Shown here: positions 31,701 through 34,700 of the stretch, piece by piece | Numbering within the stretch: the first letter of the stretch is position 1 | How the letters are laid out: each line of letters opens with the position of its first letter | NCBI RefSeq assembly: GCF_006345805.1 | Contig: NC_043004.1 | Coordinates: 26,288,001 to 26,352,000, forward strand | DNA length: 64,000 bases | From: Octopus sinensis | Taxonomy: Eukaryota | Reading direction: 5' to 3' | Translations under genes and position numbers: made by a program | Notes under the pieces: generated by a model | What the model saw: only the letters and a program-made list of their open reading frames with translations | The model's database searches: none | Told to the model about the DNA's origin: nothing

Positions 31701-34700
31701 CGCTGGTATGCCTTTAATTTAATTAGTAAACAAAGAAGAAGGAAGCAAAGATGAAGGTAGCAGTTACGATAGTTTCAATTTCAGAATGTGAAAATAATTG
31801 GTACATATGTGATGGTAATAGAAGGAAAGATAGTAAGTCTTACATTAAATTTTGTTCTTGCACTGGAAATTTCGTTGGGGAGAGGTTTCATTGCAATAGA
31901 CTTGTTAGTTTCGTCGGGCAATTAGAGTGGGGTGAATATTATTTAGATGCGGGTTTCGGAGATCGATTAAACGCATTTTATTAAATTTGTTTATAGTCAC
32001 CAGCGGTGTAAATTAAGGGGTGTAACTCTAAATTAAGGTGAAAAGGGAGCTAACTCATACGAATATTGGACTAGGAAGGGTGGTTTAAAATTGTATTATG
32101 GCTAAGACTTATATTATTACTAGAGTTTACGAAGTTCTTAGTGCTAGAAGGGGCCCTATGTAGTTGCAAGTAAATTATTATGGAATTTGGAGGGCGGATG
32201 GGTTTGTGGGGTGACTATTTATGTGTAAGGGTTAAAGGTGGTTCCCAGCTAATTAAACTTAATTCGATGACTATTCAAGTTTGGGATTATGAAAGACAGA
32301 ATATATAGTAGATACATCATCATCATCATCATCATCGTTTAGCGTCCGCTTTCCATGCTATGTATATATATATATATACATGTATCTACTATATATAAAT
32401 ATACACACACATATATATAAACATACATACAAATATATATATATACACATGTATACATATACATATAAATATATTTATACAAAATTAGAAATATTGAATT
32501 TCTAAATGTCTCAGAGAGACATGAGCGGTGGTGGGGCAATATAGTGGTTGTATACTGTCAACACAATGTGACAGTCCCGTAAAGGGAATCACACCACCGC
32601 TATTTAGCCCTAGGAAGCATCGACGCTTCCTGTCGGCTTTGACACATTTCCTGTGTCCTTATATTTGCAAAGGGGAGGCAAGCACCCCCACCAGCTAGGA
32701 TTAGCACCTGGAGACATGTTTCTGGGTCTTGCCCGTCATCAGTCCAGGGTAGCAAGTCCTGCTAGCTGAGATGGCTGTGACCGCTTTGCAAATATATAAT
32801 ATTTTCAGTGAAATTTATTCACTGGTTACCAAAATTAGAAATATTGAATTTCTAAATGTCTCAGAGAGACATGAGCGGTGGTGGGGCGATATAGTGGTTG
32901 TATACTCTCAACACAATTCCTGTAAAGGGAATTACACCACCGCTATTTAACCCTAGGAAGCATCGACGCTTCCTGTCGGCTTTGACACATTTCCTGTGTC
33001 CTTATATTTGCAAAGGGGACACATTTCCTGTGTCCTTATATTTCCTAGTAACAGCTTTTGTTATATTTCTGCTACTTTTAAATAAAGCATATTACACTAC
33101 CTCTGGTATTTGAGTACTCTTTTTTTCATCTTGTTTCATTTATGTGCTTACTCTGGTATATAAATATATATATATATATATGTAACATCACATCTGGGTA
33201 CTCTTACTGTAGCCAACTCTCACCTGTTTTCCATAACTAGATATGTTTCTCATAGAAAACTGGAAATGAACAACTTTATATGATGGTGATGTTTGTTGAC
33301 AACCATCGTGAGATACCTAGGCATGGGCACACTCACAAACAGATGAGCTTCTTTCAGTTTCTGTCTACAAATCCACTCACAAGTCTTTTGAGGGGAAAAC
33401 ACTTGTCTAAGATGCTGTCCAGTAGGACTGAACCCAGGATCACAAGTTTGGGAAGCAAGCTGCTTAAGCACGCAGTGATGTCTCCACCTGTGTGTTTATG
33501 TGTGTGTGTGTCTAAACGAAAGCACTCACACACCAGAAAAAAACTTCTTCCCAAAAGAGGTTAGTAACATCCCAATATCAGATTCCATAACATTTTGTTT
33601 TTTAAATAATATTTTTTTTAAAAATCACTTTTAAACTTCAAAACTGTATTAAATAATTCTCATAGACTTTAAAATGTATATATATATCACAAGAACGATA
33701 ACTTTGTCATACATAAAGAATTACCTTAGATGTTAATTCTGTTTGAATTTATTGATATCTGATTATTAGCATGGAAAACGGACGCTAAATGATGATGATG
33801 ATGATGAAATAGTTTACCAAATTCACTTAAAACTGAGTGTTAATGACAATGGTGATAATGGCAATATCTAAATATTTAAATTTGTAAGTGAAAAAAGTTT
33901 CCAGGAAACATTTTAGTGGAGATAATGAAAGCACTAAGCTCACCTTTGATATGAAAGGGATGTGTATCCGAGTATATGGTTTGATGAGCTTAATCAATAC
34001 TTGGGTACGGATATTTCTTAATAAATCTGGAAACAAAAAGAAAAAAATATATAAAAGTGCATACATACATATGTATGTGTGTGTATAGTAAAAATCAAAA
34101 TCAAATCAAATCAAACCAAATAAAAATAGATGAACATCAATGGAATTTGTATCCTTTGTATCCGAACGTGACCGTAGCCAGTACCGCATCGACTGGCCTC
34201 CGTGCTGTGGGCACGTAACAAACAACATCCGAGCGTGGCCGTTCGCCAGCCTCGTCTGGCACCTGTGTCGGTGGCACAAGAAAACACCATCCGAGCGTGG
34301 CCGTCTGCCAGCCTCGTCTGGCACCTGTGTCGGTGGCACATAAAATCACCCACTACACTCTCGGAGTGGTTGGCGTTAGGAAGGGCATCCAGCTGTAGAA
34401 ACACTGCCAGATCTGACTGGCCTGGTGCAGCTTCGAGCTTGCCAGACCCCAGTTGAACTGTCCAACCCATGCTAGCATGGAAAGCGGACGTTAAACGATG
34501 ATGATGATGATGATGATGATAGTACAAAGTAAGATAGGGGTTATGGGTGTAACCCACTATGGGATAGCATTTATCGAATATACTGTTGATGCAGCACCCA
34601 GATTCTTAATACATAAATATTTTTAATTGCAATGCAATTAACTCATTTAATGCATTAAATGGGTGAAGGTAAAGAAATATTTTTACTGTAAATTTATAAT

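Follow-up and report, generated by a model that had tools for sequence, protein, structure and literature searches.

A type I hammerhead motif in an intron of Octopus sinensis COPS2, probably the ribozyme of a small non-autonomous retroelement

What is a hammerhead ribozyme motif doing, in sense orientation, within an intron of COPS2, an essential signalosome gene, in Octopus sinensis? The locus lies in a stretch of 64,000 nucleotides of contig NC_043004.1 (assembly GCF_006345805.1, positions 26,288,001 to 26,352,000 of the forward strand), hereafter called the window, and all coordinates given below are positions within it unless another locus is named. A first-pass annotation of this DNA had described a near-intact hammerhead at 32691-32769 as a feature of the gene standing by itself, and had proposed that its cleavage could affect the splicing or output of COPS2. 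The motif was found again, but as the ribozyme of a 564-bp insertion with a partial tandem structure (32480-33043). We estimate at roughly 0.8 the probability that it is a canonical metazoan type I hammerhead belonging to a small non-autonomous element of the non-LTR (long terminal repeat) retrozyme type, mobilised by Penelope-like elements (PLEs).

The motif, whose coordinates were verified base by base (Table 1), forms a hammerhead only when the window is read along its minus strand, as 5'-UCAGCUAGCAGGACUUGCUA CCUGGA CUGAUGA C GGG CAAGA CCC A GAAA CAUG U C / UCCAGG UGCUAAUCCUAGCUGG-3', the slash marking the predicted cleavage site, which falls where it had first been placed. The core is complete for a type I hammerhead (C3 U4 G5 A6 N7 G8 A9, G12 A13 A14, A15.1-U16.1 and H17), and it is surrounded by three helices of which helix I is the open one, as this type requires. 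The core boxes, the 6-bp helix I, the GGG/CCC pairing, the palindromic helix III and the type I topology thus all stand as initially reported. Helix III is made of a single base pair (A15.1-U16.1) and a palindromic CAUG loop, ACAUGU overall. The minimum free energy (MFE) fold of the motif yields helix II as well as helix I with its distal extension; the distal CAGCUAG/CUAGCUG pairing, already pointed out before, does exist, as one part of an imperfect helix of about 50 bp. The UAC that immediately precedes the 6-bp helix I on its 5' side, together with the CAA-rich loop 2 (CAAGA), may resemble the tertiary-contact layout of Schistosoma hammerheads.

Such a layout is that of the "canonical" hammerheads of metazoans, which are of type I, with a helix I of 6 bp and a helix II of 4 bp interacting via their loops, and with a helix III of 1-2 bp under a small palindromic loop, an arrangement that is unstable as a monomer but active as a dimer (Cervera and de la Pena 2014, PMC4209133). 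With newt satellite 2, Schistosoma Sm-alpha, HHR_Amex1 and HHR_Amex2 of the axolotl, and the hammerheads of coral and mussel retrozymes, the octopus motif shares the topology and the CUGAUGA/GAAA/UH core, a 6-bp helix I followed by an internal loop, a helix II that is short and ends in a small loop, and a helix III reduced to one A-U pair under a palindromic tetraloop (PMC4209133, PMC7229834). By analogy, its activity would depend on dimer formation through the palindrome, as had been suggested. It differs from this group by its cephalopod host, by going undetected with Rfam models, and by the base of helix II, where C10.1 and A11.1 form a C.A mismatch in place of the highly conserved G10.1-C11.1 pair (PMC4209133). 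The nearest precedent is the U.U found at this place in HHR_Amex2, an abundant axolotl family that still cleaves (Cervera and de la Pena 2020, PMC7229834).

This C.A mismatch had been presented in the first-pass annotation as the one defect of the motif, explicable by a single CpG transition. The notion of one defect is too simple: changing the A to G would give C10.1-G11.1, which is the reverse of the conserved pair (PMC4209133), and a mismatch at this position can be native, as in HHR_Amex2 (PMC7229834). A CpG transition is plausible, since 4 of the 5 substitutions that separate the two repeat copies described below are transitions, 2 of them at CpG, and since about 1 substitution is expected in 79 nt; it is, however, not demonstrable without other copies of the family.

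A second hammerhead-like motif is present at 27174-27234 on the plus strand (AUGGUG CUGACGA, a 32-nt helix II, then GAAA CAUG U U CACCAU). Its helix III is again ACAUGU, and the basal position of its helix II is A.A; the mismatch of the COPS2 motif may therefore be native to the family rather than the result of damage. This second motif lies within a 539-bp element (26824-27362, plus strand) bounded by perfect 33-bp terminal inverted repeats (26826-26858 and 27330-27362), with a (TA)26 tract after it (27361-27412), downstream of COPS2 on the opposite strand and 5.5 kb away from the intronic motif. The 539-bp element had no BLAST match between the orthologous anchors in Octopus bimaculoides, and its motif had no Rfam match and a fold z-score of only -1.05.

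We now turn to the DNA that carries the intronic motif. Direct repeats are found at 32480-32676 and 32830-33019 with a spacing of 350 nt, and the 153-nt interval between them holds the hammerhead. The repeat period is 350 (343 after a 7-nt indel), and the insertion contains 1.54 units: read in the sense of the hammerhead, a short terminal tail, a 5'-truncated copy and then the complete unit. The two copies differ by the 5 substitutions mentioned above and by the 7-nt indel (relative to 32480-32676), which amounts to 2.6% divergence, and the duplication and insertion are therefore young. When the 350-nt unit was permuted to start at the cleavage site, its MFE was -134.1 kcal/mol, compared to -90.9 +/- 5.0 kcal/mol for shuffled sequences (z = -8.69). 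The element contains short open reading frames (ORFs) only. No target-site duplication or terminal inverted repeat was detected at the borders of 32480-33043.

Table 1. Positions, in the window, of the hammerhead motif, of the insertion that carries it and of the flanking COPS2 exons
Feature	Position	Strand	Details or support
Hammerhead motif of type I topology (core, helix I, internal loop, distal CAGCUAG/CUAGCUG)	32691-32769	-	Sequence, fold, descriptor match
Minimal hammerhead CCUGGA-CUGAUGA-C GGG CAAGA CCC A-GAAA-CAUG-UC-UCCAGG	32707-32748	-	Base-by-base check
Helix I, 6 bp	32748-32743 with 32712-32707	-	CCUGGA paired with UCCAGG
Core box CUGAUGA	32742-32736	-	
Helix II	32723-32735	-	C10.1 32735; GGG 32734-32732; loop CAAGA 32731-32727; CCC 32726-32724; A11.1 32723
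Core box GAAA	32722-32719	-	
Palindromic CAUG loop capping helix III	32718-32715	-	
U16.1 and C17	32714 and 32713	-	Predicted cleavage between 32713 and 32712
Long imperfect hairpin, about 50 bp	32660-32796	-	Helix I extended, three-way junction at the tip; MFE -57.2 kcal/mol, z = -4.11, 0/200 shuffles as stable
Complete 350-nt unit	32480-32829	-	Sense from 32829 down to 32480; carries the only hammerhead; GC 45%
Upstream 5'-truncated copy	32830-33019	-	Last 190 nt of the unit, head-to-tail, pseudo-LTR-like, without hammerhead
Duplicated "tail", 26 nt, at the sense 5' end	33018-33043	-	Exact copy of 32984-33009, 34-nt spacing
TA-rich microsatellite	32359-32479		Adjoins the sense 3' end of the element; second (TA)n tract at 33157-33184
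COPS2 coding exon 11	33944-34026	-	Followed by GT donor 33943-33942
COPS2 coding exon 12	31029-31087	-	Preceded by AG acceptor 31089-31088

Two kinds of known elements resemble this insertion. Non-LTR retrozymes, as a class head-to-tail repeats of 150-450 bp, have been described as low-GC tandem repeats of about 170-450 bp (monomers of around 300 bp, 350-390 bp in mussels), expressed as highly self-paired circular RNAs and abundant in molluscs such as mussels (PMC7229834). The octopus insertion is like them in its unit of about 350 nt, its GC content of 45%, its head-to-tail repetition, its self-paired sense RNA, the type I hammerhead within the unit and the mollusc host, and unlike them in having 1.54 units with a single hammerhead. 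PLE insertions, for their part, are partial tandems in which a 5'-truncated copy (pseudo-LTR) stands upstream; they often end in a tail of 30-40 bp on one side, sometimes include an inverted truncated copy, and show a preference for (TA)n targets (Craig et al. 2021, PMC8557442). Here too a full unit follows a 5'-truncated tandem copy, with a short terminal tail and a (TA)n site, and the repeated part includes a hammerhead (PMC8557442, PMC4209133). In contrast to PLEs, the octopus element has no reverse transcriptase (RT) or GIY-YIG ORF and measures only 564 bp, so that it would be a non-autonomous derivative; the minimal hammerheads of PLEs ("min-HHRs") are also usually devoid of helix III and of tertiary-contact loops, unlike the octopus motif, which is of the canonical kind. 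A 2026 preprint derives the retrozymes of animals from PLE pseudo-LTRs (10.64898/2026.07.22.740005). The combination of partial tandem, terminal tail, TA-rich flanks and hammerhead is read as a PLE/retrozyme signature (PMC8557442, PMC7229834). The second hammerhead-like motif, which also adjoins a (TA)n tract but belongs to another small element, points the same way.

The history that we propose is the following. The element would have inserted recently into a TA microsatellite of COPS2 intron 11, as a full 350-nt unit with a 5'-truncated copy ahead of it, presumably by means of a PLE enzyme. In the life cycle of such an element, multimeric transcripts would be cleaved by the hammerhead to give highly self-paired RNAs one unit long; by analogy, two neighbouring copies would dimerise through their palindromic ACAUGU helix III to give the active form. 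The processing of multimeric element transcripts would be the native job of this ribozyme.

The position of the insertion relative to COPS2 was established by tblastn with a COPS2 sequence, which placed the gene on the minus strand and yielded 12 exons for residues 26-442. Cephalopod cDNA contigs confirmed the exon blocks (blastn). Our exon numbering rests on these 12 exons, exon 1 being beyond the window. The hammerhead is intronic and sense to the gene, as had been claimed: coding exons 11 and 12 are separated by an intron of 2856 nt with GT and AG ends, and the motif is located about 1230 nt away from its donor and about 1620 nt away from its acceptor. The spliced COPS2 sequence was closest to a 90%-identity cluster comprising Octopus vulgaris/sinensis/bimaculoides, Argonauta hians and Sepia pharaonis.

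Presence of the motif in orthologous introns had been put forward as a check, and it was not found. The COPS2 locus of O. bimaculoides (L011/L014, GCA_001194135.2) aligns with the window across exons and introns with 83-96% identity, and the element is flanked by two anchors, window 33684-33181 corresponding to L011 48948-49448, and window 32297-31525 to L011 71201-71995. No BLAST match to the element was detected in the COPS2 loci of O. bimaculoides (100 kb), A. hians (29 kb) and S. pharaonis (46 kb). No conservation therefore points to a role in COPS2, and the insertion is lineage-specific and young. A literature search returned no published report on octopus hammerheads.

Could the motif nevertheless be a random hairpin that happens to contain CUGAUGA and GAAA boxes? 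Its resemblance to a hammerhead was evaluated with a descriptor similar to those in common use for these ribozymes (CUGANGA, a helix II of at least 3 bp with a mismatched closing position allowed, GAAA, UH, and a helix I of at least 5 bp), for which 300 first-order Markov simulations gave 0.057 matches per 64 kb by chance, and 0.017 when helix I was at least 6 bp. The string CTGA.GA-(8-45)-GAAACATGTH was expected 0.015 times and observed 3 times in the window. As the descriptor demanded neither the palindromic helix III, nor the extension of helix I into a 50-bp helix (z = -4.11), nor the location in a tandem repeat, the true odds against chance are greater; moreover, each helix length fits the published canonical type I layout. 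In favour of chance are the z-score of only -1.6 for the MFE of the 85-nt motif on its own, and the silence of the Rfam hammerhead models (Hammerhead_1, HH9, HH10 and others), which reported no motif in the whole window at the gathering score, nor in slices of 901, 101 and 131 nt at E<=10; the scans matched only low-complexity, miRNA-like noise in TA tracts. We attribute this silence to the models being of limited reach where helix III has 1 bp and the base of helix II is mismatched, while granting that the motif still failed to be placed in these families. One descriptor match, near 16544 on the minus strand, was clearly spurious, its CTGATGA corresponding to the YADD-box codons by a non-LTR-RT-like ORF (16145-16537, without Pfam match); RT genes can thus produce false hammerhead cores. 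Taken together, chance is excluded as the origin of the COPS2 motif. A repeat of another class (local segmental duplication, miniature inverted-repeat transposable element or short interspersed nuclear element, SINE), bearing a hammerhead-like hairpin but unrelated to PLEs or retrozymes, would fit with the lack of an RT or GIY-YIG ORF nearby and of further family copies, and the 33-bp terminal inverted repeats of the neighbouring 539-bp element are also readable as those of a miniature inverted-repeat element. We nevertheless hold such an origin to be improbable: the signature described above is specific to PLEs and retrozymes (PMC8557442, PMC7229834), the stretch 32480-33043 has neither a target-site duplication nor terminal inverted repeats at its ends, and inverted truncated 5' copies are typical of PLE insertions too.

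Two further explanations grant that the motif is a genuine hammerhead and give it an activity at this very locus. According to one, the intronic ribozyme would cleave the COPS2 pre-mRNA, alone or in trans, and tune its splicing or output. The core boxes are intact, the motif is transcribed in sense with COPS2, and its UAC and CAA-rich loop 2 may be Schistosoma-like. Exon-tethering experiments with intronic hammerheads indicate, on the other hand, that cleavage of an intron need not disturb splicing, which counts against a regulatory role. Helix II base mismatches do occur in active natural families (PMC7229834), and the domestication of retroelement hammerheads in introns has precedents, reviewed for the conserved intronic hammerheads of amniotes (PMC6155905). 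Like HH9 in RECK, HH10 in CTCL and the hammerhead of DTNB, on which the analogy is built, the octopus motif is a type I hammerhead of retroelement origin placed in sense in the intron of a protein-coding gene. The amniote examples, however, are conserved at orthologous positions across vertebrate classes, whereas the octopus one has no match even in O. bimaculoides, of the same genus, left no BLAST trace in the Argonauta and Sepia loci either, and sits within a recognisable young insertion whose copies are 2.6% apart. It is also present only once and its helix III has 1 bp; monomers of this kind cleave poorly (axolotl Rtz_331 reaches 6% in 1 h, PMC7229834), and it lacks the conserved G10.1-C11.1 pair. 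We therefore regard a regulatory ribozyme as very unlikely. The other explanation makes of the insertion an active source of retrozymes, COPS2 transcription giving rise to unit-length linear and circular RNAs that would serve as transposition intermediates. The sense orientation in a constitutively expressed gene, the strong self-pairing of the 350-nt unit, the small divergence of its copies and the abundance of retrozyme circular RNAs in molluscs such as mussels (PMC7229834) all go in this direction. Release of a monomer, however, needs two cleavage sites, and only one is present, the upstream copy being truncated short of the hammerhead; neither were matching ORF-bearing transcript contigs found. 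An active source at this place thus appears to us highly improbable.

The explanation that we prefer, a retrozyme-type element mobilised by PLEs, has itself several results against it, to which the silence of Rfam must be added. Retrozymes have one hammerhead per tandem unit, and this element has a single one, its upstream copy stopping at 33019, short of the hammerhead region. No ORF for a PLE RT or a GIY-YIG protein was found in the window, where the long ORFs are non-LTR RT or MULE-like. No clean empty site could be reconstructed: the interval between the anchors in O. bimaculoides consists of 21.7 kb of other sequence, starting with microsatellite and SINE, and the junctions are microsatellites. 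No other copy of the element was detected in the window, nor in about 175 kb of the three cephalopod loci, and the repetition of the unit in the genome, as a multi-copy family, is something that the explanation has to presume. Finally, the concatenated six-frame translation of the unit had no match at E<=0.001 in a collection of 5.8 billion proteins, and a degenerate hammerhead pattern gave 0 matches in JGI metagenome contigs.

If the element is of the retrozyme type, as we believe, what happens to the copy in COPS2? Judging from its sequence, it is most likely a passenger of the pre-mRNA that cleaves poorly or not at all and would be spliced out with the intron. Poor or absent cleavage is expected because there is only one hammerhead, whose helix III is 1 bp long and whose helix II begins with C.A; because the upstream copy is truncated and devoid of hammerhead, the pre-mRNA would offer no dimer partner in cis and release no monomer. 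An effect of cleavage on COPS2 splicing or output, as first proposed, is unlikely, since conservation is lacking and the copy is structurally handicapped. In Xenopus, 42-44% of retrozyme copies are intronic, yet depleted relative to intergenic DNA (10.64898/2026.07.22.740005).

Other observations concern the gene and its repeats. Intron size is very different between congeners: COPS2 intron 11 spans 2.86 kb here (31088-33943) vs about 26 kb in O. bimaculoides (L014 55950-81867), and the whole gene about 80 kb in O. bimaculoides vs about 22 kb for exons 2-13 here. DDA1 lies directly upstream of COPS2, head-to-head, in octopods, and some Logan transcript contigs fuse both genes. In COPS2 intron 8, a core-like string, CTGATGATGTCCAATAAAACTGAAACATGTC, occurs at 39052-39022 on the minus strand and is conserved in O. 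bimaculoides (L011 43443); a similar one is present in a COPS2 intron of Sepia pharaonis (L013 14348). These strings, of the form CTGATGA...GAAACATGTC, are without helix I and were not called hammerheads; that of intron 8 has no convincing helix II either, and may be a decayed minimal PLE hammerhead or a coincidence. Copies or fragments of an octopus SINE, which occurs many times in the O. bimaculoides locus too, were found at 34284-34521, 42009-42231, 45046-45298, 30658-30835 and 32293-32360; the last one, of 68 nt, is an inverted SINE 5' end placed beside the TA tract at the edge of the hammerhead element. Transposon-derived ORFs are present at 40466-41449 and 3868-4464 on the plus strand and 61743-62246 on the minus strand; they include an RT fragment in a COPS2 intron (Pfam RVT_1, E = 9e-15), a weak zf-RVT match and a weak match to a MULE transposase.

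A more speculative possibility, to which we accord very little probability, is that C.A is native to an octopus-specific hammerhead family active in vivo, and that the COPS2 copy is cleaved in trans, through pairing of its ACAUGU helix III with retrozyme RNAs that this family would supply in abundance. If true, an essential signalosome gene would have a brake that is specific to the species and depends on a retroelement. In a variant of this idea, the 50-bp imperfect hairpin could act as an intronic double-stranded RNA substrate, octopuses being subject to heavy RNA editing.

We conclude that the hammerhead of COPS2 intron 11 is most probably that of a retrozyme-type element which landed, in sense orientation, in the intron of an essential gene. 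No new mechanism is involved; a cephalopod example is added to the known association of type I hammerheads with PLEs and retrozymes. Rfam models are seen to miss hammerheads of this kind, with a short helix III, and the value of the finding is chiefly for annotation and for surveys of ribozyme-bearing repeats in cephalopod genomes.

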